Positions 210-64,000 of a stretch of DNA of 64,000 bases are shown one piece after another. The position numbers and the translations under genes were made by a program. This DNA comes from Paragordius varius (Eukaryota; Animalia; Nematomorpha), in contig OZ176052.1 in assembly GCA_964247055.1 (NCBI GenBank), forward strand, positions 868,001 to 932,000, given 5' to 3'. How positions within the stretch are numbered: position 1 is the stretch's first letter; each line of letters opens with the position of its first letter. Under the pieces are notes generated by a model that was not told where the DNA came from, ran no database searches, and was given only the letters and a program-made list of their open reading frames with translations.

Positions 210-451
210 TCTATTAAATTTAAATATTGAGATATCTTCGATTACATATACATAAAGTTTAAAAAAAATCGTTTCAATTTTTATTTTTTTAATTCATTTT
301 TAATATTCTGATAAAAAAAATATATATCTAAAACTAAAATAGCTTTTTAAAAATTCTATCAATCCTTATAATGTCAGTTTTTCTCAAACTTATCATCAAA
401 AATCAAAAAAAATTTTTTGAAAATGAAAAAAACTATAAAATTTTGAGTTAC

Positions 452-2246
452 CTGTAGTTGAAACAGCTATCCCAAAGTTAGATGGATTTAAAATAACCGT
501 TGTTTTCAACCTTTTTCTATTAGGTTGAGTATTGGATTTGTTTCGATTTTTAATTTGGTTTGAGGAATTTACAGTATTTTGGGCCCAGCAACCGCAGCCA
601 TACATTGCTGCCTGTAGAAAGCGCATTTATAATTATTTCTCCGATATAAATACCAGTAAAATGATTTTAAAAGTTTGACATATAATTCGTTTACCACATG
701 AGAAAAGCGAAGTAATAACTTTTAAAAAGTAATAAAAACTTTCATAAAGCGTAAACTTAAGAAATTCAATTTTTTCAAAAAAGTTTCCGATTTTTAGTGC
801 CTTTTATTCTTGTAAAGCCTAATCTTTTAATTAATTCGTAAAAATGATGAGTATAATTTACCAATCTTTATAAAAAAAACTTAATTAAACTTTTAAATCT
901 TTTTATTTCAAAATAACCCAAAAAATATATCTAAAAATATTATAAATATAATTTTATACATGACCAACCCGACCCTGAGATTTTAAAATGGAACCACCAG
1001 ATGAGACTCCAGCAAAATAATTTCCGTTCTGATCTATGCAAACAGCTCCAACTGTACCAATATTCAGGTCTAATAAATATAAATACTTTTTGAAAATAAA
1101 TTTTGTGTTTTAATTAGGACTTGATTTCCCAAAAGCGTATCGATGATATTTAACCATAATATATATGCATTCTGTGGCCCTTTAAGCGCATTATTAGGAA
1201 ATAATTTTCGTAATTATTGGAATCACTCATCTTAAACTGTTTGCAACCAAATATTTTTAACTAATTTTTTATTGACCCGCTAAAATAATTAACAAAATAT
1301 ATATTTTAAGTTTAAAAATTTAATACCATTAAAAGTATTTAATTATCTTTAAAAGAAAATTTTTTGATGCTTGATAGATGGATGGTCGTTGCGATTGGAT
1401 TTAAAAGCTATAAATTTTATATAGGGAAATTAAAAAAACTGTTATTTAGTTTTTTTGGAAAAAAATTCAAATAAGTATCATTTTTAAATCTAAGATTTCT
1501 TTTATAATGTAATAGAAAGTTAAGAAATATCATCTTTTTGTAAAACAAATCAAAATACCCAGAGGAGTTGAAGATATGAATTCGACATAACATAACTATA
1601 GAATTATGAATTTAAAAGAACTTTGGTTAAGTTCTCGGCGTCTTTTAATTTTAATTTGTTTTCCAAAAGCAATTTAGCTTCCGAGTAGAGTTTAACCGAT
1701 TTTGGCGGGATATCAAATGCGTTTAAGTTACCTATTTTATAAGATAATTCAAACCAGACGATGTCCTAGCATTTTCAATCACTATACTTTTATTTAGATA
1801 TATATCTTACCTGGGTGGTATTAGGACATTATAATAATTTGTAATTTGATGAGATAAAATATCAAAAGATAATTTGATTGGGTTCTTTGAATCTAAATAT
1901 AATTTTAATTTGGTTTACACATTTGACTCCACACGCAGAGCCCCACATCAAGTTGCATCCTTCCATCATTGAAGCGTCCCCTTCAATCTCACCCGTAATA
2001 TTTAAATTTGAACCAAGACCAGCATTAGTAATTGCAGAATTCTATCAATATTACAAAATGATAACTTCCAAATGCTGTATAGTTTCTAAGATACATGTTT
2101 GGCCATCATCACTTAATAAACTTTCAAGACCCTAAACATAAGACATTTTAAACTTTAAATAACGCATTTTTACATAGATTCATGTAACTTTTAAATTGTA
2201 TTGGATCATGAAATCCGGCTCCAAGATGCAAAGCCAATAAAACCAT
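452..2246 (-). CDS. TASP1: Taspase-1 (threonine aspartase, type-2 asparaginase/Ntn-hydrolase family); spliced, 3' end lies outside the window
   Basis: Exons 2246-2154 (MVLLALHLGAGFHDPIQFKSYMNLCKNALFK), 2131-2066, 2041-1921 (NSAITNAGLGSNLNITGEIEGDASMM), 1892-1811 (SKNPI..IPP), 1786-1755, 1731-1622 (PP..NKLKLKDAE), uncertain linker exons ~1280-1156, 1069-960 (LNIGTVGAVCIDQNGNYFAGVSSGGSILKSQGRVGH), 611-452 (AAMYGCGCWAQN..IAVSTTG). GAGxH, VSSGG, GRVG and YGCGCWA are Taspase-1 signatures. All junctions used are GT-AG. Confidence 0.93.
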
Positions 2247-3830
2247 ATGGATTTTTTGAAAAAACTGGTTTCCCGCTCTAATATCCCATGTAGTTGCTTA
2301 TATAAAAATATTTTAAAAAAATTATTTATATAATCAAGTCTATGTGATACATAACACGCTTTCTTTTATTTAGTATCATCATAAAAATTGTCTATTTTTG
2401 CTTTTAGGAATTAGGATAATAGCTATATATTTTAATTCCAATAAATAACGGCAAAGCTTATTTTTATTAAAATATAATTGATTATTGCCCACAAACATAA
2501 TATTGTATTTGATGTACCTACATTTCTAAAAATTCTCCACTTATATACGATTTTATGAGTAGGGGCGTAACAAACGGGTTAGGGTGCGTATATTTCCCCT
2601 GGAGGATGTTTTGATTTTTTTAAAAAAGCTTGAATTTTTGGCACCAGTGACATTTTCCGGGATTTATGAATGTTTGCGAGGTCACTTTTTAAAAGTATAT
2701 CAAGGTAAATCACACAATTCAAATGCTATTATTTTTCGTGTCATCCGTTATTAACCAATATTCTTAAATCCAGTATATCCTTAACTGTTTCCGGTGTAAT
2801 TAGGCTTTTTGGTGTAATGATAGAGTATAATATTTATTATAAATGGTCGTATGTATCATATCGCGTACTATGCAGCTCCTTTATATTCATATCCTAACAA
2901 ATAGTATCTTGAATTATTATATTTCTTGACATTGATCTGTTAATATGATGGGTTTGTTACATAAGAGAATTATTTTGGGATAATGTTTCTGGGCTTGTAA
3001 CAGCTAGAACAATATAAAGATGTTGTGCCTTTGTATGCTTTAAGGTTGCCCAGATTTCGTTTTAAGTTATCTATCCTGTAGCAGCTTTGTTGAATCTATT
3101 CACCTAATGCCATTTTTTCCTTACGTTTAAAATCTATTCATTAAAAGTAGAAAATTCCCTTCTAAGTATTCCTAGGATATACTTTTCAGATATTATTTTA
3201 GTTTGAAAAAATACCAAAATAATGATATCATCGGAGTAATTAGGCATAAAGTATTACCTAAAAAGCCAATAAGCTATTACAAATCATTTGTACCGAAACC
3301 ATACGTCTTGTTTTGTGCCTCAAACATTACCAATTTAAAGTTTTAAATTAAATTTTTTTTAACTCAGTAAAAATTTAAACTAGGGAACAAAAGGATTCAT
3401 AACCATCATAATTCTAACATGATTTTTTTTGAATTTAAATACCAGCGGTAGTATGGATTATTTTTTTTTCAAATTAAAGCTAAATGGTTTTCTTCCCTAA
3501 GCTATCGTAAGAATAACTCAAACGCAAAACTATTTTATGAAATAAATGTAATTTATTTTATAATTATCATGTGAAATACCCATTATATAATTGTTTTAAA
3601 ATTGATAATATATATAAAATAAAATGAAAGAAAGGCAGAATGTAATGGATAAAGAGTTTATTAACATACATGTTGTTTAATAAATTCTTGACACCTTACT
3701 AAGCTAATACATGCTTTACCGTTACGATACCGCTTGTATGCTTTTGCCCATCACAACATTATAAAATATATGTATGATATTGTCATTTATAATTGGTATA
3801 ATAATATATTATATTTTATGAAACATAGAT

Positions 3831-6104
3831 TTATATTTGAATATCTAAATTTTTATAATAAGTATCATGTAAATTATGCTTAATAACCGAAATATTGATA
3901 GATAATATGGTGTCGCTTAAATCGGAAAGTACCGATTTATTATTATAATTATCGTAGTAGGACGGAATCCTAGTTGGTGTATAATTTTCAAATTTGGATG
4001 GGTGGATAACTGCTTTTTTAATGGGGACTTTGGCGAGACAATCTTTGCGACCAAACCAAACATTAGGCGAACCCAAAACTTTTGTTGGTTCATTTGGATC
4101 ATGCAGTTTTTCGCAGAGTTTACACCAAGAATTGATTGATCGAACGTCCCAATACTTTTTCCATTCAAAGAACCGCATATAAAGCTCGGGATTATGGTCA
4201 ACGTATTGAAGAAATGAAACGAGATCATACACTGTGCCAAAATCCATGACATTTACATAACCTTGCGTGGATATATTGTATCCACGAAAGGTTAGGTAAG
4301 AAGTCTTTTGATTTTTTATTCCATTATGTTTAATGTCAGACTGTGCAAAATGATTGATTGATGCTGATTTAGAGTTGCCTAGGATAATATCATCTATTAT
4401 AGTTGTATACATAGCACCACCATATACGATTGGTAGGATGTCTAAACTCAAAATTTTATAAAATTTTTCCGTTACATATTCGGTACAAAGCGAATTCTCG
4501 AACGAAAGATAAAATTTATACGGGCCTGTTTGTAGCATATTTAGACAATCAGCATCATGTTTGAGTGAACAAGTTAAATTCCCGCATACTCCAAAGATGT
4601 CGAGTGCAAAATATTTAGATAATTCTCTTGCGATTGCATCACGTTTACTAGCCGGGGAACAATTGCTAACAAACCATGCTATTCGTCCGTTTGGCTGCAA
4701 TGATTTTTGCCTCAAAATGCGTTGGCTAACCTCCTGATCATGAAGAACACGTGATTGACCCTTAAATAGCTCCTGGTATATTCCACTTCGTATGGGTGTC
4801 CCTTTAGGGACAATGGCACCCCATGGGCTTGGTATATCGCTCTCTGTTTTATACAACATTGACCAATTGAAAACACCTGTTAAATTTTTATAATACAAAT
4901 TTTGTAGGTGTGAAGGCGGTTCCCGTGAATAAAATATCCATCGTTGGTGAGCAATGCGTTTAGTTTCTTCCGGATACTTGAATGTTTTATAAGAATTTTT
5001 AGGGGAAAATATGAGAGCCGTGCTGAGTGATACTAAATATTCTCGATTTCGTACGAAGGCACAATTATCGACGGGGCAGCCAAAGAATTTTATAGGCCCA
5101 TACCGTATTCCTAAACGTTCCTCCCTATCATCATAATGCGTCCAATGAATGATAATTTTGGGCCTTTTTTCCCGTGGTAAATCATATTTAAGTCTTTTGA
5201 GTGTTCTGGCACATTCTAACTCCTTGTAATCCGAGTAATGGCTAAAGCGATCTTGGCAAACTGCTTTGAAGTCATTTATATTCCATTTTTTACGCCTTTT
5301 AACTTGAATGCGTACGTCATTAGTATCACTGTTAAAAGCATTCAAAGAATTTTGAACTACTTTAGGAATAAAAAAATAGGCATCATTATCATATTGGATA
5401 AAACGTCGATTAGGTCCCAAATAAAAATTGCCATCTTTTAGTGTATGGAATAGAGTGTCAAAATCCATTTTATAACGGTAAATGGAACCGTTCTGCTCTT
5501 CACTATTAAAGGTAGTTTTAGATGATGCATGTCTGGTAACATCGTATGTGGTATAGAAAAAACGTTTTTTGTATTTATCCAAAAATCTTTGAAACAAAGT
5601 TTTTAACCGAGAACCAGGTTGGGAATATATCTGTTGTCTGAGTTTCTGAGAATAATTTTTGATATCATTGTAATTCTTGCTAAAAAGTTCAATATCATCC
5701 ACATGAATACTATATTTAGTGTTTAGAAAGGGAATAATTTCTACGAAATGGCTGTTGTTTGTTTTAAACGTTGCAAAAGATGTAGTATAATATTTTTTAT
5801 TGGCATGAAGGGATGGTGAATGGAGAGGAGAGGTCGTTGAAAGATTGTACTGCCAAAGTAATAAACATGAAGTACACAATAATAGCAGTATGATTACCCT
5901 TAAAATGGTTATGTTTTGGAGATGGCAACACACATATACATTGTTGTTAACTAACAGCAACAATCTACTAAATTTAGCCAACACGCCATCTTTTAATGTG
6001 TGGATTGAGAATTTTAAACGTTGAATCCAAGTTTCGTGTGATGATTCGTTAGTTGGACAATACTCTAACGAAATTATATCAGCAGTGGAGTCACTAATTA
6101 CCAT
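3831..6104 (-). CDS. Alpha-1,3-fucosyltransferase (GT10), type II Golgi membrane protein, 757 aa, single coding exon
   Basis: Uninterrupted ORF. Hydrophobic segment ILRVIILLLLCTSCLLLWQY near residue 70; GT10 motifs FNWSMLYKTESDIPSPWG, AWFVSNC, YKFYLSFENSLCTEYVTEKFYKIL, and VNVMDF..LVSFLQYVDHNPELYMRFFEWK. Confidence 0.93.
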   Translation of the reverse strand: MVISDSTADIISLEYCPTNESSHETWIQRLKFSIHTLKDGVLAKFSRLLLLVNNNVYVCCHLQNITILRVIILLLLCTSCLLLWQYNLSTTSPLHSPSLHANKKYYTTSFATFKTNNSHFVEIIPFLNTKYSIHVDDIELFSKNYNDIKNYSQKLRQQIYSQPGSRLKTLFQRFLDKYKKRFFYTTYDVTRHASSKTTFNSEEQNGSIYRYKMDFDTLFHTLKDGNFYLGPNRRFIQYDNDAYFFIPKVVQNSLNAFNSDTNDVRIQVKRRKKWNINDFKAVCQDRFSHYSDYKELECARTLKRLKYDLPREKRPKIIIHWTHYDDREERLGIRYGPIKFFGCPVDNCAFVRNREYLVSLSTALIFSPKNSYKTFKYPEETKRIAHQRWIFYSREPPSHLQNLYYKNLTGVFNWSMLYKTESDIPSPWGAIVPKGTPIRSGIYQELFKGQSRVLHDQEVSQRILRQKSLQPNGRIAWFVSNCSPASKRDAIARELSKYFALDIFGVCGNLTCSLKHDADCLNMLQTGPYKFYLSFENSLCTEYVTEKFYKILSLDILPIVYGGAMYTTIIDDIILGNSKSASINHFAQSDIKHNGIKNQKTSYLTFRGYNISTQGYVNVMDFGTVYDLVSFLQYVDHNPELYMRFFEWKKYWDVRSINSWCKLCEKLHDPNEPTKVLGSPNVWFGRKDCLAKVPIKKAVIHPSKFENYTPTRIPSYYDNYNNKSVLSDLSDTILSINISVIKHNLHDTYYKNLDIQI

Positions 6105-28685: not shown

Positions 28686-31832
<3,147 letters not shown>

Positions 31833-48100: not shown

Positions 48101-51100
48101 AGTTATATTAGCTGCCCGAAAACACATAATTTATTTCTAGGGTCGGAATTAGAAATGTTCAAGGGTGAATTTGAATTGTTCAAGGGTAAAATTAAAATGT
48201 TTAAGGGTAAATTTGAATTGTTCAAGGGTGAATTGAATTGTTCAAGGGTGAATTGAATTGTTCAAGGGTAAAATTAAAATGTTTAAGGGTGAATTTGAAA
48301 TGTTCAAGGGTGAATTTGAAATGTTTAAGGGTGAATTTGAATTGTCCAAGGGTGAATTGAATTGTTTAAGAGTGAATTTGAAATGTTCAAGGGTGAATTT
48401 GAATTTTTCGAGGGTGAATTTGAATTTTCCGAGGGTGAATTTGAGCTGTAAATGGTTTATCCTTAGGCAAAGTAAAAATTTTTCTTAATAATTTCCTTTT
48501 TATGTTTTATCATTATACTTTTTACTTAACAAGTGAGACCGTAATAATAATTTACATTTCTTTTTATCTATTCAAAACGATATTTTATATGAACAAATAA
48601 AATAAAAAATATATGCTATATTTAAAAAAACTATGTTTTTTGTTTTTAAATTTCTAAGGGTTTATTTTTTCTCTGTTTTAACCAAAACGCTTAAGAAAAC
48701 TCATTTTCAATAAAGGATATATAATATTTGAATTACTTTTACTTTTTATGTTTAAATATTTTATAATTTATTTTAGCGAATACTTGTCAACATTCAAGAA
48801 AACTGTGGCTATTCATGAACTTTTTTTGTGTCGTTTAGCCGCTCACCCAACCCTGAAAAGTTTTCATAATTTCCGTGTTTTCCTCGAATATGATCAAAAT
48901 GTAATTTTTTTGAAAAAATTTTTTTTTGAAATTTAATAATTTAATTATTATGATTACGAATTAAATAATTTTTCTAAACAAAAATTGTTTAAAATGTAAA
49001 AATAAAACTTTTTTTGATATATCTCTACTTTTTGAATATATTTTAATTGAAATATTACGTTATATATGGTTTTAATTTAGTGTTTTCTAGTTTTAATTTC
49101 TAAGAAACGTTTAAATAAAAAATATTTCTAGATTTATTTTTTTAAAATTTTTAAAACAAAATATTTAGTTACTGTTTTGAATTTTTTTCCATAATTTTTT
49201 TATTAAAAAAAAGATTTTGAAACTTTCGAAAAAATTGTTTTTTTTCATTTTATAGTTGAATGTCCGTGGTAAAAATAATCGTGAAAAATTGGAACAATTA
49301 CTTAAAACAGTTTCTCTTACGATGGATGAAACACTTTTATCTAAACGCAAGGTATGCGATATTTTTAATTTTAAAAATTTCATTTTTTTCAATTATTATT
49401 TTTATGAAAAATATAACCTTAATTGAGGCAATTTTTATTATATTTTAATTAGTTTTTATGTTTGATATATTCTCCACATAACTCCTCTCCTTATATGAAT
49501 TTTAAACTTTTTTATTAAACATTTATATATTAATTATACGATATTATATAATTTTAAACGCATTAAACATGTAAATTAACATAAATTTTCTATTTTAATA
49601 CTCAAATATTAGATTTATACCATTTATCTCAACTAGGTATATATAGTTTAGAGTAAATTAAGTAAAAAATTTTGTGATTAAATTAAACAATATTTTTACA
49701 AAAAAGATGTCTGGCATTAATTAATATATATTAATATCAGTTATTTGCCAGTTATTTTCAGGTTTTATCAGTAGGTGTTTTAAAACTTATAACCAATAAC
49801 AGAGAGACAATTGTATTCAATTTATAATAAGGCACATTATTTACTCCATATATTTTAAAACGTCTAAAAAATAAATTGCTTTTAGCAAGACACATTATAT
49901 ATATATATATATATACTGTTTTTCATGTATTTTTTTAATCTTTTTGTTTCCAGGAAATAGATGAATATTATGATGAACAAAAATCTTTTTATATGAATTT
50001 TACGGCCAGAATGAAGGACGCAGTTACAAAAGGCGAAAAAGTCGTTAAATTTTCTAAAGGTATGTCCTAAATTTATTTTCCATAAAATTGTTTTAATATA
50101 TTTTATTTTGCAATATTCTTCAGTATAGGAAAAATAGCAGGTTAAGTCATAAGTCTTTACTGGTTCTTTGTAGAAATACAAAATTTTGTAGGATAATCAA
50201 TTATTTATTTTATTACATCGGCTTCCACGCATTTTGCCCATCTCTCAGAATATCTGTGAATGCCGTACCATATTAATGGATTCTCTTGCGACAAACCATT
50301 TGTCAAGCCATTTACGTCTTCGAAATTATTAAAGTGCTGTTCTGCGAGTGTGTGCGCCATTGCTGCGAAGAGTAATATTTAGATGGCGCCAGGTCACAAG
50401 AATTTAGCGGATATGAAAATATTTTTCTTCGAAGTGAATTCAAGGTGTCTTTTACTCGTTTCGCCGTGTGAGACGTAACATTGTCAGGTAGCGAAATCAC
50501 TTTGCTATGTCTTCTGTCCTATTCCGGCCGTTTTTTTAATTAAGCAATGTTTTTAATTAATCATTTGCAATAGATTTGTAAATCAACGGTTTCAATGGGT
50601 TTCAACCGTTTATAATGCAAACAACCGCTCTTATTATACCAACAGAGAGCATTATTGCGGAAGCAATTTAGCCTTGGTGTGGATAGAACGGCTTGGTAGG
50701 GTGAATTCATGATTTTTCCCACTTTCGACTTACAAAATAAAGCCCCTTTTCATCACCCGTCGCAATTTGTTGTAAAAAGGATTTCCTTTCGTGACGTAGA
50801 AGCAGGATTCACGAATCATTTTGCTATTTTCGTTATTGACATTCAATAAAATTAATTGTGTGGAACCCATTTACCGAGTTTTTTTGTATTTTCCATTGCT
50901 CGTAGACATCTACCGATTTGATGTACATAATGCTCCTACCAATTGACGTTGATCTTGATTTGATTATCATCCAATAGCTTTTTTATCATCTTCGCTGTTA
51001 CCAAAGCGCCCACACTCTTTCACATTGAAATCACAATAATTTTCAATTTGAAATCATATTTCACATGTGTTAATCGAGAAAACATGTTCACCATATGTTT

Positions 51101-55253: not shown

Positions 55254-56390
55254 TAACACAATCAATTATATATTCCACAATTTTGATAAAATAAACTATT
55301 AGGGAAAAATTAAGATTTTGAGAGAGTATGGGTTTTTTTTAAAAAAAAATATTTGTCTTTTTATTTTTAGGTTTTGTCCGTAGTATAATTGCAAATTTTC
55401 ACTCTAATAAATGTTTTTTGTAAATTTCGATGGGTTTATTTGATATTTATCTACATCTAATTCTTCACATATATACCATTTGTTCAAATTCACCCTTGAA
55501 CAATTGAAATTCACCCTTAAACAATTTAAATTCACCCTTGACCAATTCAAATTCACCTTAAAAATAAATTATGTGTTTTCGGGCAGCTAATATAACTCAT
55601 CATTAATATGAAATAGATGTTTATAATATAGTTTATTATTTTTTCAGTATTATTTTAATTTAAAATTTTTTTTAAAAAAATATATTAAAATATTTATCTT
55701 ATAAAACATATATTTTATTTGAGGGTGAATTTGAATTGTTCAAGGGTGTATTTGAATTGTTCAAGGGTGAATTTGAATTGTTCAAGGGTGAAATTGAATT
55801 GTTTAAGGGTGAATTTGAATTGTTTAAGGGTGAATTTGAATTGTTCAAGGGTGTATATGAATTGTTCAAGGGTGAATTTGAATCGTATATGGTATATTCC
55901 CATATATTATTATTAACAATTTTCTTTTATAAAATTATAGGCTTTAGAGCAGGCCATTCGTTCAACCTTAGTTACCTTGATTGAAATAGCTAAAGAAACT
56001 AATATAAATACCAGCACACCACATGATAATACTTTCACTATAAATAATTTGCCTGACTTCAATAAAGCTTTATTAAGCAATACTCATCAATCTACAAATA
56101 ATAGCAACACGTCAGAAAATGATATTTTAAATAATGAATCACAAAATACGTTTCAAAAACTTTTACTTGAACGAACAAACAACACTTCTTTATTGAACCG
56201 TAGAACGGAGGATTTTAAAAGCAGCATTTCAGACCATAAAAATAAGATCAATACAAAAAATAAGCAAAACCTTGATAATGAAAGTGGGATGACAGATATG
56301 TATGATAGTATGAAATCATCAACCTCAACTATTGGAACCAATAATACAAATAATAACCTATATTCATCAACTTTATCCGAATTTTCTTAG
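45138..56390 (+). CDS. SNX6: Sorting nexin 5/6/32 family (PX-BAR), 12 exons, start codon on an upstream ATG|GT micro-exon (45110-45112 or 45070-45072)
   Basis: Exons 45138-45236 ([17 protein letters not shown]), 45265-45375 ([13 protein letters not shown]), 46205-46326 ([19 protein letters not shown]), 48778-48900, 49256-49351, 49954-50059, 51513-51588, 51891-52017, 53698-53793, 54330-54393, 54533-54618 (IKHAK), 55941-56390. Colinear with recalled human SNX6; all phases consistent. Confidence 0.95.
46420..46720. mobile_element. Rearranged copy of the 21-bp-array foldback MITE
   Basis: Two partial copies of the core joined through facing 21-bp arrays. Confidence 0.7.
47406..47671. mobile_element. 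266-bp pogo/Tc1-type MITE (CAGTAAAAATT family); relatives at ~12826-13330, ~21050-21295, ~55063-55405, ~63550
   Basis: TIRs cagtaaaaattaaaattatacggacaaaacgta / tacgttttgtccgtataatttcaatttttactg, with TA flanks. Confidence 0.85.
47868..48458. mobile_element. Foldback-like MITE with an expanded right arm (~14 x 21 bp)
   Basis: Tandem aagggtgaatttgaa(a/t)tgtt(c/t) units at ~48150-48445, then tgtaaatggt. Confidence 0.85.
50138..51320 (-). mobile_element. Decayed full-length mariner element in an SNX6 intron
   Basis: TIR-like ends caggttaagtcataagtctttactgg / atttatgaatacacaggg. Remnant [29 protein letters not shown] (HDNA and YSPDLAPSDY motifs). Confidence 0.85.
52070..53570. repeat. Tandem array of five MITE-core units (periods 242, 244, 281, 281 bp)
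   Basis: ttgctaaaatgaataaattatgtgttttcgggctaatataac recurs at 52131, 52373, 52617, 52898 and 53179. Confidence 0.9.
55473..55894. mobile_element. Foldback-like MITE with 21-bp arrays (complete)
   Basis: taccattt..(4 units) + core + (8 units)..tatggta. Confidence 0.85.
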
Positions 56391-57149
56391 ATATATATGT
56401 GGCTGCTAATTAGCCCAGACATATATTTAAGCATTTTTTAAAAAAATGTAAAAAATTTATAGATTAAAACATTTAAGGGTTAAATATAATACATTCCCAC
56501 ACGAAAAAGTAAACATATAGGATACAATATAACTAGTATTTTTGTTTTACAAAAATTGTAAGACCTTTGAATTTTCTTTGAAAAAAAAATACGCTTTAAA
56601 ATTTGCAATAATTGTGCTTTTTTGTCGTATCTACACCGGTTATTTAGTTTTATTAAATTTCACATTCATTTAAAAGATTTATGAAGTATATATGATTATT
56701 TTTTATTTTATGAGTTATAAATTAAGTGTTGAAAACATTTATCATATTTTACTTGAAAAATATCATTTTTTTCATCATAAATCCATGAAATTACATTATT
56801 TATTCATTTTGAAAAATGATTGATGATTTATTATAACAAATAATATAAATAAATTTAATATAATTTTTGTTTCAAACTGATAAACATACATATAATGACT
56901 CCTAATATGAGGGTTTGGGATCCTATTAGAAAAGACTTACAAAAGAGTTTTAATCTTAAAATCAAATCTTTTAGCATTTAGAGCCTTACGGTAAAAAAAT
57001 TACTTAAAATTTAGACCAGTATTTAATCCGGGTGCTTTTTTATGCCCCCCTGAATATATATTAAATTTTTTTATGGACTTATTTTAAACATAAATATCTG
57101 CTGCAAATATGTCAAACAGGTATGGAATTTTTATCAGTATTACAGTGTG

Positions 57150-57381
57150 CATTTACAGCCATGTATTTTTTATTTTATCAAAAATTTATTTTTTCCGTTA
57201 AATGGGTATAAATATTTGGTAAAGAATGGAAAAAACAAGAGCTCTATGGTAATTCTTATACTTTTTTAATGAATATGATAATGTTAATACCATAGAGCTC
57301 TTGTTTTTTCTATTCTTTACCAAAATATACCCATTTAACAAAAAAATTTTGATAAAATAAAGGATACATGACTGTAAATGG
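57150..57381. mobile_element. Near-perfect ~230-bp hairpin element
   Basis: catttacagccatgtat..aaaaaacaagagctctatggta [loop] taccatagagctcttgtttttt..atacatgactgtaaatgg. Confidence 0.8.
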
Positions 57382-57537
57382 TTGCTTATTTCACACTAAA
57401 TAAAGTAGGGCAATGCGCAACACAGGAGTGTATAGAAAAAAAGAAAAGAAATAATTGTTTATTCAGCATTTTGTTGTTTTTTTCCATACACTACTGTTGT
57501 GTTGCAAAGCTACTATAGTGTGAAATAAGCAACCATT
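57379..57537. mobile_element. ~160-bp hairpin element abutting the previous one
   Basis: atggttgcttatttcacacta.. / ..tagtgtgaaataagcaaccat. Confidence 0.75.
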
Positions 57538-58819
57538 AAATGTGTGCAAAAAAATTTTTTTTCATGGGATAGCTTATGACCAGCGTATTCATTTGCCGCA
57601 AAAATTTTTATTTGTTGACAACCTAGTTTTTTTTAAATATTGAGAGAAAATCGAAATTGGGCAAAAAGTGAAAATTAAGGATAATTCAAAAAATAATGAT
57701 AAAATTTGAGATTATGTATTATAATCATTTTAGGATATATTTTCAATATAAGCCTAAAATCATATAGTTAGGGTTTCTATAAAGTTTCAGTCAAAAGATG
57801 GCGTTTTTCTTTTAACAGACCTAAAAGATAAAACAAATTTAATAAAACTATATTAAAATAATTTTTTTTTATTATTTACTACTTAAACTCACTATTAAAA
57901 TCTTAACATTAATATTTTATTCAGTAAAAAATACTTATATATCATATAAAATCAAAAATATATTGTTTTTTATTTTTGCATTTATCTAATTTATGAAAGT
58001 ATAAAAAAATCGTTTTATTTTGGAAATTTACATGAGTGGGAATTAAGTATATTATTTATGCAAATTTCCAAAAGTAGTGGAATATCAACCAACAATCCTT
58101 ACAAATCCCTGTAAGAAGTCTGTTTTAAGACAATTAATCAGAAAAACTATAACTTTTTTCTAATTTTCCGGATTATACAATGCAGTTTTGTGGTATCGAA
58201 TGCAGATATTAGCACTCTTTTTGACCAATTCTTAACGTAATTTTCTATAAGTTCGGTTGAAACATATTTTAATATGGCTGATCGCGCTTTACATATGATT
58301 TTTTGATTTGGAGTAATTGTTGTTTTCTATAACCATCACGCCATCGAAATATCACTCTGAGGAAAATATAATTAGGCCTCTTGTCTAATTACTTATAATA
58401 TCTTACTTGTTTTAAAGGGAGTCTGCTTTTTTAAACATCTATATGGCATCTTGATTCACTTGAAACAATGTTTTTATATAAATTTAATTTTTGATAAATA
58501 GATTTACCTATGTTTAACAGTTATTGTCAGACTATTTGTTTTCCCATATGTACCTAACTTGCGATTTTTGATTTCGGCAAAATATAAAATAATATTATAT
58601 TAGTCATAGACTAAAGATGGACAATCTTCTGAAAATATTTATTAGGACCTTTTTTAGACTCATTGTAAAATTTTATATCTGGACAAATGAATATATCACC
58701 CGTCTTTAAATTATTTTATCAATATATCATTAAAAATTTTATAAAACACATTTATTAATAAAACTATATAATATAATGATATTATAACACATATAATTTA
58801 TGCTAGCCTATATAATATA

Positions 58820-59149
58820 TACCATTTACAGTTCAAATTCACCCTTAAACAATTCAAATTCACCCCTCGAACAATTCAAATTCGCCCTAAAAATAAATTA
58901 TGTGTTTTCGAATTAATATAACTCATTATTAATATAAAATATATCTTTATGGCATAATTAATTATTTTTTTCAGTAATATTTTAATTTAAAACAAAATTT
59001 TATTTTTTAAAAATACATTAAAATATATGTAATTTTTAATCTTAAAAACTATGTTATTTATTTGAGGGTGAATTTGAATTGTTCGAGAATTTGAATAGTT
59101 TAAGGGTGAATTTGAATTGTTTAAGGGTAAATTTGAACTGTAAATGGTA
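58820..59149. mobile_element. Foldback-like MITE with 21-bp arrays (complete)
   Basis: taccatttacagttcaaatt.. / ..aatttgaactgtaaatggta with the same core. Confidence 0.85.
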
Positions 59150-59282
59150 TATTAGGGAAAAAACAAGTGAAAATAGGAATGATAAAAGGCACGGCATATA
59201 AAGTTGCAATATTAGATTTAAAAAGAAATGATGATAGCATATTTGCAAAATTAAAAGAGATGATAAGGTTTGTGTGGGTGTG

Positions 59283-61780
59283 TTAAAAAGCACGATTAGG
59301 TCTTACCTTGACCAGGTACATTCTTTTGTCATTAAATGGACTTTGGTGGTGAACCTTGGGCAAATACATACGTTTACCTGGTAAAAGTTATATAAAACAT
59401 AAACAAAAACAATATAATAAATTTTTAAATCCAAATTTTTTTGTTTGTCTTAGGGCTTGGAATTCAGAAATTTTTTTAAAATAGCTCCGTTGGCCGCATT
59501 TATAATATATATGGGGGGCATTAATACCTATTTAATTAAATTTCAAATATAAGATTGTAAAATGCAAACAAGATATACCATTTTTTTGGTTTATTTGCCA
59601 ATAGACGAATTTTAAATAAAAATTCTTTCCTAAGGCTTCGAATCGGAAATTTTTTTGAAATAGCTCCGTGGGTCGCATTTATAATATATATGGATGGGGG
59701 GTATTAATAAATTTTTTATTGGATTTCAAATATAAGAATTGTAAAATGCAAACAAGATATACCATTTTTATAGTTTTTTGCCAATTATATAGACTTATTC
59801 AGGTATTTTTTTTTAAGAAATACTAATTTATTTAAGATTTTGTTAGCATATTTTTGCAAATTATAAATTTCCAAATTTTTCTTGGGCAGATAATGTTTCA
59901 AAGGGCCGCATATTAAATACCCCTGTACTAAAAGGTCGGGCACCTGCTTAAATTAAATAGGAACTAATAAAAGCTTTATTTCTTTTTCAAAGCCTGAAAT
60001 ACGTATAAAACGAGAAATGCCATTACAAAATTTAGTCCCGGTTTGAAACTGTTTTAAGATGAACATTCAATCAGATATAGATAAAATTTTTATTCGTATT
60101 CCATGAGTCTTTATTCAAAAGCACATGTTAGTTAAATTTAAAACTTTTTTAATAATCATTGAGTTTTTTAACCTTTATTTCTTTTCTATTGGTTTTTATT
60201 TCTTCGAATGCGAGACTGATTTAACAGGTGTTTTTAAGATTATAATCGAATGCATTATATAATTATTTACGGACCCACACTATATTCAACATATGATTGC
60301 CCCTTTTTCCCTTTTTTAGAGGTAAATATCTTGTGTAGTATAATTTCTGAAAGTTTAGATACTAGCCTACCCAGAGTTAACAAAGATGTTGGAAAAATTG
60401 CTTCGTATAATGATATATCAAATACTACGATTTAAACAATTTTAACCCCCAATAATTTTTATGTTTTCAAATATTGGCATAATATGTTAAATATTTTTAT
60501 CTCGCTATTAGATATTTTTCTGGTTGTGACCAGTTTGCGGCTTGAGGCAGCCTTTCTTGGTCATAATTAATCAATCAATGTTTACCACAATTATGAAATT
60601 AACCATTTGCCTTTGATAGTGTAATTAACATTTACACCTTAAATTCACCCTTTAACATTTCAAATTTAATCTTAAACATCTCGACTTTACCTTTGAACAT
60701 TTCAAATTCCATTTTAAACATTTCCAATTAACCCTAAAATTAAATTATGTGTTTGGAATTCAAAATACATATCTATATATTTTGGTTATTATATATGTAA
60801 CAACTTAATATTAATTCATGCAGAATAGTATGATAAATTATGCAAAGACATACTTCATACAAAGAGTTGAATTAGCCTACTTAATTTATTTTTAAAGTTA
60901 AAATGTTTAAGGGTAAATTTGAAATGTTCAAAATCAAATTTTAACTGTTTTGGGGTGAATTGAGTAAATAATATTAAAATTTAATTGAAAAAAAAATCAA
61001 TTAAAATTGTAAATAATACAATTTTTTTATGAAATGAAGTTTATATTATCATTATTTATTATTTTTTATCGCGTAGGAAGTTTTAAAATTTTGGTGGTTA
61101 TTTTTATAAGCGAAGATTAACTGAATGGATTCTTAACCCGTCCGACTTAACCCATAGCTATATTTTATAATACAATATCTTTTCTTATAATTGCAAGCCA
61201 TTTGTTAACTTACAGTTTAAGTCTAAATACCAGAATTTTTCCAAAATAAATTATATTATATTTTTTGGCGGGCAAGAGTATAGGTGGGAAAAAACGAATT
61301 AAATGGTTTTTCTAATTATTTGTATGATTTAGTTAATTAAAGTACATATATATATATATATATATATATAGTTAATTACTGGGTTCATTTCTGGCAATAT
61401 ATATGGCATCCTCATACTGCCCTAAAATGGAAAAAAATTATCAAAAAATTAAACAAATATAGTTAATATAAAATCATTTATCTTGAATTTTTATTGATAT
61501 AACTAATAATTAATAAAAAAACTACAGACCCCAAATATTTAGATTATAGGGTTTTTAACGTTAAATATGTTTAAAAACTCAAATATTCCAAAAACGTGTT
61601 TATTAACACAAAAAGATTTTTTAAGAAATTTTAGCAATTAACTAAATTTAAATAAAACTTTTAAAGAAGTTGATAGGAGAGTATAAATTAGAGTAAAAAA
61701 TTATTTTTACCTTGAATCACGATAACCAAAAAGCTAAGGGCCAAGAGCCCAAAACATACTAGAATATTCTTCATTCGCAT
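59283..61780 (-). CDS. Putative 54-aa secreted pro-peptide (neuropeptide-like precursor), 2 exons
   Basis: Exon 1 61780-61711 (MRMKNILVCFGLLALSFLVIVIQ+g, donor caag|gtaaaa). Exon 2 59377-59283 (acceptor ttttaccag|, phase 1 matches). Product: MRMKNILVCFGLLALSFLVIVIQG-KR-MYLPKVHHQSPFND-KR-MYLVKVRPNRAF*. A possible donor aag|gtaaga at 59307/59306 could lead to an unidentified third exon. Confidence 0.72.
59450..59925. repeat. ~185-bp tandem duplication, probably hAT-derived, in the pro-peptide intron
   Basis: ggctt(g/c)gaat(t/c)..aaatagctccgt..gccgcatttataatatatatgg..gcaaacaagatataccatttt occurs at ~59455 and ~59635. Confidence 0.65.
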
Positions 61781-63710
61781 GAACTAAACTTTACGCAGAA
61801 AATGTAAAAATTTGTTTTAAAGAAAAAAACTTTTTTTTCAAACGATAAAATCAAATGATCAACCAAAAAACAAGAATTTGTAAAAATTGGTTAGGATAGC
61901 TGGCTAATTTATTTTATAGAGAGGAGGAGGGAAGTAAGAAACTAATAAAATATGTTGTTTCGTTTGAACTGTAAAATGTTCCTTTATTTACTTTAATCAT
62001 TAATTAAATCATCTATTTATACAAAGTATATTATTAATAATAAATTAGATATATAATCAATACGAAAATAATATGCGCAAGACACGCGAAAAAAGATACT
62101 AACTAATTATTTATTTAAACAAACTAAGAAATAGGTTAATTTGAGTTTTAAGAAAAAGTTTTTTCCCAAAATGGTATTTGATATTTAAATTATATTTTCC
62201 TTTTGTAAATGTAAAAAATTTAGAAAACTAATGTCACGTCTTTAGAATTAAAGGAGTACTTAAGTTTTCACCGCGTTTCAAAGATAATTTTAAAATTAAT
62301 TAGGATTTTCAAGTCTAAAATGAAACTTTTCAAAACATTTGATGACTTTCAATAAATTTTTTTAAAGTTTTTGTTAATTTTATTGATAATTTATTTCTTA
62401 AATTAATTTTAACGATATCAGAGACCATAAAATTAGCACATAAATTAAATTACATTAGATTATTATATAATTTAATATTCAGTGTGAAGTTTTTTAGAGT
62501 TTACAACAACTCTTATAATTAACTATATATTATCAAATTGATTTAACATATTAATATGCTGAGAGTGTCTAATCAAATAAATAATTTAATTTAAATTCTT
62601 TTGAGGTCTTAAAAATTAACAATGAAAACTAAAAAACTAATCTGTATATATATTAATTTTAAATAAAATCTTAAAAAAAACCAATCAAGACTATTGGAAT
62701 TTCAAGTTAAAACGCTAATAAGTATAAAATTTCATTTTTTCAAAAAATTTATTTTTAAGGCTGTTACATTAAGATTTACAGTTATAACTGATGTAAAAAT
62801 GGAAATATTGCTAGAAATATTTTTGCATGTGCTTAGATCCATAAAATTTAATAAAAGATTAAAATAAAATTTAGATTAGGTGATTTTTAGTTTACGACGT
62901 ATATGCCTCCCACTTTATCCTTTATTCATGAATTTTAATATCAAAAATTTGAGGCCAAATTAATAAGTAGAATGATATAATAAATATTCTGATCTAATAA
63001 ATAATTTATATTATATATATATATATATATATAAAGATAAAATAATAAAAGTTTTTTACTTTTTATAATGCGTACTTCTTTTTAGATTTTTACGGATTCA
63101 ATCTTCTTGCCAGGATAAATAAAGTTTGGCTTAGCTTATAAATAATTTATAATATCAATAGTAAAATGTTTTTATCAATTCCAATTAAACTCTACATTTA
63201 TTAACCAAATTCAATATTTTTCAATTCAAGCTTAAAACTTATTTTAAATAACAAAAACTTATTTAAAAATATGTTTTAAGCATTTATGGTCAATATATAC
63301 ATTGGAGAATTTGATTTATTTACAATTAAAATATAATGACAAATATTTTATTCTAAAAGACAACCATACTTTTCAAATTTTGATTTTAAATATAACTCAT
63401 TGTTTTTCAATTGCAAAGTACATAATAGAGATGTATATTCGTAACACAATTAATTATGTATTTTACGATTGTAATCAAATGATATTCATAGGATAAATTA
63501 AGGTTTAAAAAAGTATAGTTGCCTTTTGAAAAAAAATATTTGTTTTTATTTACGTTTCGTCCGTATAAATTCAATCTCTTGGAGTAATTTTGAATTTTTA
63601 ATAAAAGTTTCAAAAAAAATAACGGATAAAAAATCAAATATTAGAGACTAAGGGATAACTATACATGTTTATTATAAATTAAAAGCAAAATTATTTTATA
63701 TTGCAATTAA

Positions 63711-64000
63711 CTTTTTGATTCAAACCCCCGACATTATTTAAGTTGATATTTTTAAAAAACTACTGAAAGAAACGGTCCTAATATAAATTTATGCTTCTGT
63801 CCTAATAAAGGCTAAATATCAAAATAAAATTTAGTGTTGGAAAAAAAGATATCAAACTAATTGGACGCCATTTTTATTTAGAACATTTTTGCAAAATATC
63901 ATGTTTATTTGATTTTAGCTTAAAATTAATTTACTTTTTTATAAAAACAATAAACAGAAGTGGTATATTTTGCATTATTTTTATATAAAAGCATCATCAT
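63711..64000 (+). mobile_element. Third, partial copy of the piggyBac-like MITE
   Basis: ttaa then similarity to 19151 onward (aaaaaactactga..aaacggtcc..aaatttatgcttct..gcaaaatatc). Confidence 0.65.

Follow-up and report, generated by a model that had tools for sequence, protein, structure and literature searches.

A candidate two-exon gene for a secreted neuropeptide-like precursor in the horsehair worm Paragordius varius

We describe a candidate peptide gene on the minus strand of a 64,000-nt stretch of the Paragordius varius genome, called the window below; positions without a prefix refer to this stretch. The candidate has two exons (coding parts 61780-61711 and 59377-59283; 54 codons) with a possible 42-nt cassette between them, and we hold it somewhat probable that they encode a secreted precursor. 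A neuropeptide or hormone role specifically is a tentative assignment that we place below an even chance. These judgements are nested: the high confidence that exon 2 is coding includes the confidence in the two-exon gene, which in turn includes that in the neuropeptide or hormone role. The candidate is a plausible orphan neuropeptide-like precursor, matching no known family.

EXON 2 AND ITS TWO PEPTIDE UNITS

The coding part of exon 2 (59377-59283, minus strand) follows the acceptor ttttaccag|GT. A G carried over the exon junction plus this GT gives a Gly codon, which is followed by KRMYLPKVHHQSPFNDKRMYLVKVRPNRAF and then by a TAA stop codon at 59285-59283, for an overall layout of (G)KR-MYLPKVHHQSPFND-KR-MYLVKVRPNRAF-TAA. 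A sequence-only reading of this stretch had pointed to KR-flanked peptides that both start with MYLxKV, and this is borne out: each MYLxKV unit is immediately preceded by KR, and the stop codon closes the second peptide. Dibasic-flanked paralogous copies of this kind characterise secretory prohormone and neuropeptide precursors.

Codon comparison and motif counts were applied to the two units. Unit 1, KRMYLPKV (59352-59375, minus strand), and unit 2, KRMYLVKV (59304-59327, minus strand), are identical at 7/8 residues despite differing at 7/24 bases. Five of the differences are synonymous (CGT/AGA for Arg, TAT/TAC, TTG/CTG and GTT/GTA), and the other two bases fall in the single Pro/Val codon. 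In a simulation of neutral drift, where a DNA duplicate takes seven substitutions, at least 7/8 residues were kept in only 0.024-0.03% of cases (~3 of 10,000). Selection has therefore maintained the similarity of the units as protein sequence in the exon 2 frame. The exon is open in a plus-strand frame too, but in that antisense reading, which was rejected, the units share only 4/8 residues.

The back-translated motif, written as the DNA pattern AARMGNATGTAYYTNNNNAARGT, is matched twice in the window against 0.00 expected, and three times in the searched assembly (110.6 Mb in 44 contigs). Two of these three matches are units 1 and 2, which lie in the same frame 48 nt apart; the third contains a stop codon. 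Taken together, the pattern of synonymous differences and the genome-wide rarity of the motif are two independent arguments, on which exon 2 very probably is, or recently was, protein-coding.

Base composition was also compared with the surroundings. G+C rises locally at both exons, to 0.38-0.39 where the window averages 0.265, and its distribution over their codon positions is gene-like. Exon 2 itself has a G+C of 0.38 with a local peak of 0.43. It is present in a single copy, so it is not part of a transposon.

The two peptides are 14 aa (MYLPKVHHQSPFND) and 12 aa (MYLVKVRPNRAF) long. Their common part is the N-terminal MYLxKV and a Phe at position 12: with read-through of unit 2 to the stop codon, the two peptides share Val6 and Phe12. 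An amidation Gly, a common but not obligatory feature of such peptides, follows neither of them (...PFND-KR and ...NRAF-stop), as the earlier reading had it. The only G-K-R in the precursor is at the exon junction, directly after the signal-like sequence.

EXON 1 AND UPSTREAM SIGNALS

The coding part of exon 1 (61780-61711, minus strand) encodes MRMKNILVCFGLLALSFLVIVIQ plus the first base of the Gly codon, and ends at the donor CAAG|GTAAAAAT (G|GTAAAA) in phase 1. A stop codon sits one codon 5′ of the ATG. The product begins with a basic N-terminal region, MRMK, and continues with an 18-residue uncharged hydrophobic core, which is long for a cleaved signal peptide. There is a possible A-x-S cleavage site (...ALS) after residue 16. 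The exon 1 product may accordingly be read in two ways, as an ER signal peptide cleaved after ...ALS or as a signal anchor; in both cases the C-terminal part of the precursor would lie on the lumenal side of the secretory pathway. Exon 1 occurs once in the genome, is not repeat-derived and has a G+C of 0.39.

The TATAAAA that had been noted about 135 nt upstream is at 61918-61912 (minus strand), 138 nt 5′ of the ATG with no ATG between. As a candidate TATA box it is weak evidence in DNA of 26% G+C. The purine at position -3 is absent at both ATGs.

A 26-nt GT..AG segment within exon 1 (GTATGT...CCTTAG) was considered as a micro-intron. Its removal shifts the frame, destroys the hydrophobic core and meets a stop at the exon 2 junction, and it was rejected.

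EXON JOIN AND TRANSCRIPT STRUCTURE

The proposed intron 1 (59378-61710, minus strand) is 2,333 nt long, runs from GT to AG, ends in ttttaccag and is in phase 1. The signal-like exon and phase-matched second exon 2.3 kb away that the sequence-only reading described are thus both in place. The exon 2 frame has an in-frame stop four codons 5′ of the first KR, and between the two the acceptor at 59378/59377 provides the sole AG. It follows that translation must either reach the frame in phase 1 out of an upstream exon or begin at the Met of MYLPKV.

Candidates for the upstream exon were scanned on the minus strand over 4.6 kb (59378-64000). The segment 61780-61711 is the only ATG-initiated hydrophobic exon with a phase-1 donor there, even at the loosest threshold. 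Under strict criteria, only three signal-like phase-1 loci are found in 128 kb (both strands). With the criteria relaxed, chance alone would supply 0.2-0.8 such loci per 2.4 kb. Because the chance rate depends in this way on strictness, the exon join is not statistically secure; moreover, the scan criteria were set after exon 1 had been seen, and we therefore take the link between exon 1 and exon 2 as likely, not proven. On these sequence grounds exon 1 is probably spliced to exon 2.

A minor share of our confidence goes to a coding exon 2 in some other transcript structure. Three variants can be named: inclusion of a cassette exon at 61421-61380, use of a donor at 59306 into a downstream exon, or a start at the Met of MYLPKV, which would give a 28-residue non-secreted micropeptide. 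General support for this comes from the non-negligible chance of a signal-like exon under loose criteria, and from the RNA runs discussed below, which gave no contigs here that could fix the exon layout. Against it, no further phase-compatible signal-like exon lies upstream, and the exact placement of a dibasic site ahead of each unit is meaningful only in a product of the secretory pathway.

The possible 42-nt in-phase cassette (61421-61380, minus strand; ttttag|GG...CCA|gtaatt) would lengthen the precursor by GQYEDAIYIARNEP(S), placed after the signal and ahead of the first KR, adding an acidic spacer of a type typical of propeptides. It is one of 37 open in-phase AG..GT segments in the intron and has the best splice contexts of the 37, but that many segments arise by chance, so that its presence is not significant in itself.

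The alternative donor that the earlier reading placed at 59306 also exists. It is a near-consensus AAG|GTAAGA (59301-59309, minus strand, with the G of GT at 59306) inside unit 2. There is no AG within micro-intron range 3′ of it. The sequence 3′ of 59283 contains high-copy repeats (58787-59184 and 57000-58200), with no evident minus-strand G+C peak of the coding kind. Read-through to the stop codon aligns Val6 and Phe12 between the two peptides and is favoured on that account, and the 59306 donor is probably unused.

No AATAAA occurs in the first 220 nt after the stop codon. The first one, a candidate poly(A) signal, is at 59057-59062 (minus strand), 221 nt 3′ of the stop and inside a MITE-like element.

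SEARCHES FOR TRANSCRIPTS, HOMOLOGUES AND PARALOGUES

Transcripts. Runs X4-X6 yielded no contigs on 56200-62150. These runs carry the matching species label, are guessed to be RNA, are small and were available as contigs only, so their silence argues mildly against high expression. Among the runs recorded as RNA, none contains the locus.

Homologues. A protein search with the 30-residue exon 2 product found no match among 1.84 billion representatives, a search of low power at 30 residues in which, by our estimate, an orthologue below roughly 70% identity would escape. Pfam, Rfam and the ESM Atlas gave no match, and the two-unit DNA pattern had none over metagenome contigs. In the full-text literature the string MYLPK was absent, and no neuropeptide catalogue for hairworms (Nematomorpha) was found. 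We also used the neighbouring TMEM121-like ORF as a synteny route to a related worm; it gave no match at E<=1e-10, a strict threshold, yet one that a close relative should pass.

Paralogues. At the protein level, a search of the worm's own genome returned the exon 2 locus alone. With one mismatch allowed, the motif had 30 matches in the whole genome, against 27 for a reversed-pattern control. The best four of these matches (KRMYLVQV, KRMYFSKE, KRMFLYKV and KRMNLSKV) stand in unrelated contexts with no second unit, and were rejected as paralogues and taken as chance.

A possible third copy in the intron was rejected as well. The segment at 61380-61421 (minus strand), read in a frame other than that of the cassette, gives SMRMPYILPEMNP, which starts with MRM as exon 1 does and has RMPYILPE at 61412, recalling the RMYLP of the unit. 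A pattern modelled on it looked rare but was designed after the segment had been seen. An unbiased test, in which each exon product was locally aligned against the translated intron, gave p ~0.13-0.16, and the segment was not the best match.

Processing enzymes. The proprotein convertase P domain (PF01483) is found above the cut-off at two loci of the genome, C4:9.885 Mb and C3:7.708 Mb.

SETTING OF THE LOCUS

The window spans C3:868001-932000 of the assembly, is about 26% G+C, uses the standard genetic code and holds ordinary animal genes, among them a GT10 fucosyltransferase, a C2H2 zinc-finger gene and a leucine-rich-repeat gene. The fucosyltransferase (3831-6104, minus strand) is a single ORF of 757 aa with a long N-terminal extension ahead of its catalytic domains. 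The zinc-finger ORF (28686-31832, minus strand) continues after its C2H2 fingers into an Asn/Ser/Thr-rich tail of about 490 residues. Pfam matches it to generic C2H2 only; its fingers resemble the YY1/pleiohomeotic type, for which such a tail would be unusual.

The candidate locus lies within a stretch of about 14 kb that is laden with repeats and has no long ORFs, reaching from 56.4 kb to a TMEM121-like gene past the window end. No ORF above 140 aa was found around the candidate across 41300-64000 of the window plus L006:1-6200. The nearest recognisable genes include a PX-domain (sorting-nexin-like) exon at 48748 (plus strand; a weak Pfam match, below the cut-off), a TMEM121/CECR6-like single-exon ORF at L006:6266-7225 (minus strand), and a CDP-alcohol phosphotransferase (CEPT1-like) gene from L006:8098 (plus strand). 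A plus-strand open frame of 137 aa rich in Asn, Ser and Thr (55977-56390) lies to the other side, 2.9 kb past the stop codon of the candidate. Its Pfam match is sub-threshold, and it may be either non-coding or an exon of low complexity belonging to a plus-strand gene.

Repeats occur both in the proposed intron and 3′ of the gene. Copies of one MITE-like family are at 55483-55900, 58812-59160 and 60634-60965, and also at about 48258-48488; their inverted ends consist of arrayed 21-nt subrepeats (TTCAAATTCACCCTTAAACAA-like). The copy at 58812-59160 begins about 125 nt 3′ of the stop codon and is of very high copy number, and repeat analysis places the copy at 60634-60965 in intron 1. In a low-coverage DNA run (X3), contig depth over 58787-59184, which spans the copy nearest the stop, is about 11,000-36,700, which places this family among the most abundant repeats of the genome. 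Intron 1 also contains a tandem duplication of about 183 nt (59440-59780), its copies 82-93% identical and low copy in X3. A second high-copy repeat at 57000-58200 has a summed X3 depth of 300-4,400, many variant positions and inverted joints, and is probably a transposon family. Run X3 is essentially identical to the window where the latter is unique and covers neither exon; it carries no cross-species information.

PROPOSED FUNCTION AND RIVAL EXPLANATIONS

We propose the following course for the product of the two-exon gene. Exon 1, as an ER signal peptide or signal anchor, would target the precursor to the ER. In the secretory pathway a subtilisin-like proprotein convertase would cut after each Lys-Arg, and the basic residues would then be trimmed by a carboxypeptidase. 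This would free two non-amidated paralogous peptides, MYLPKVHHQSPFND (14 aa) and MYLVKVRPNRAF (12 aa), which would act as extracellular signals of an undescribed family, with neuropeptide or hormone as the most likely kind. Selection is concentrated on MYLxKV, and this N-terminal core is likely to be the part that contacts a receptor.

The sequence-only reading had gone as far as a neuropeptide or hormone precursor. The layout behind that proposal is real, the frame is under selection and convertase P domains are encoded in the genome; on the other side stand the absence of contigs from X4-X6 and of a homologue among the representatives searched. Its wording, 'neuropeptide or secreted effector', is a reasonable inference rather than a finding.

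It is unlikely that the locus is no functioning gene at all, whether a relic of a once-functional peptide gene, now unexpressed, or AT-rich DNA in which open frames are paired by chance. The empty RNA runs, the lack of relatives or paralogues in our searches, the low recognition of the exon product by a language model, and the repeat-laden surroundings without long ORFs would all fit such a locus. For exon 2, however, the count of the motif across the genome and the synonymous pattern exclude pure chance. The relic version has to contend with a frame, both KR sites, a stop codon, both splice sites and a signal-like exon that are all intact, which is unexpected in a long-dead relic, given that about 9% of random codons are stops at 26% G+C (an estimate).

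It is very unlikely that the peptides are parasite effectors secreted into the insect host and directed at its peptide receptors, a ligand or antagonist resembling proctolin (RYLPT) being one example: horsehair worms are manipulative insect parasites, our searches found no relatives of the candidate, as is common among fast-evolving effectors, and MYLPK shares YLP with RYLPT, but this is the sole resemblance, only 3/5 residues match with Arg1 and Thr5 lost, Val replaces Pro in unit 2, the peptides extend 7-9 residues further, and purifying selection on an ancient internal duplication suits an endogenous ligand equally well. The narrower proposal, in which a diverged peptide with the YLP core would mimic or antagonise proctolin, a myotropic peptide of insects, as part of the worm's manipulation of host behaviour or muscle, is slightly more improbable still.

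We therefore return to the two-exon gene for a secreted precursor as the best explanation. If expressed, it would be the founding member of an undescribed family of peptide signals in Nematomorpha. An internal duplicate with saturated synonymous differences and a MYLxKV core predicts orthologues in other horsehair worms, with the N-terminal hexapeptide as the receptor-binding part. Peptide genes that are small and split into several exons are missed in this genome by annotation based on ORFs. Taken alone, the candidate is one more orphan precursor and settles no long-standing question.

COMPARISON WITH KNOWN SYSTEMS

Arthropod proctolin. The likeness to proctolin had been called loose, and rightly: it amounts to YLP, 3/5 residues, in unit 1 only. 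As in the proctolin precursor, a short peptide is placed close behind the signal. Residues 1 and 5 of the candidate are Met and Lys instead of Arg and Thr, and unit 2 reads MYLVK. The candidate peptides have 12-14 residues, whereas proctolin has five and is ended by a basic site. Proctolin adjoins its signal cleavage site directly; the candidate peptide comes after KR. The defining feature, an RYLPT pentapeptide abutting the signal, is absent, and identity with proctolin is rejected.

Invertebrate multi-copy precursors. The comparison here is with KR-flanked, non-amidated precursors of the nematode NLP class and the orcokinin type. The candidate differs from them in that its sequence resembled no described peptide family in our searches, in the N-terminal position of its conserved core (MYLxKV) and in having no amidation signal. 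It agrees with them in its N-terminal hydrophobic, signal-like stretch, in KR immediately before the copies, in having two paralogous copies with a short conserved core in a small precursor, in a proposed phase-1 intron just after that stretch, and in the presence of convertase genes in the genome. Processing at KR|Met, as proposed for both peptides of the candidate, is used in Caenorhabditis elegans NLP-1 and NLP-40.
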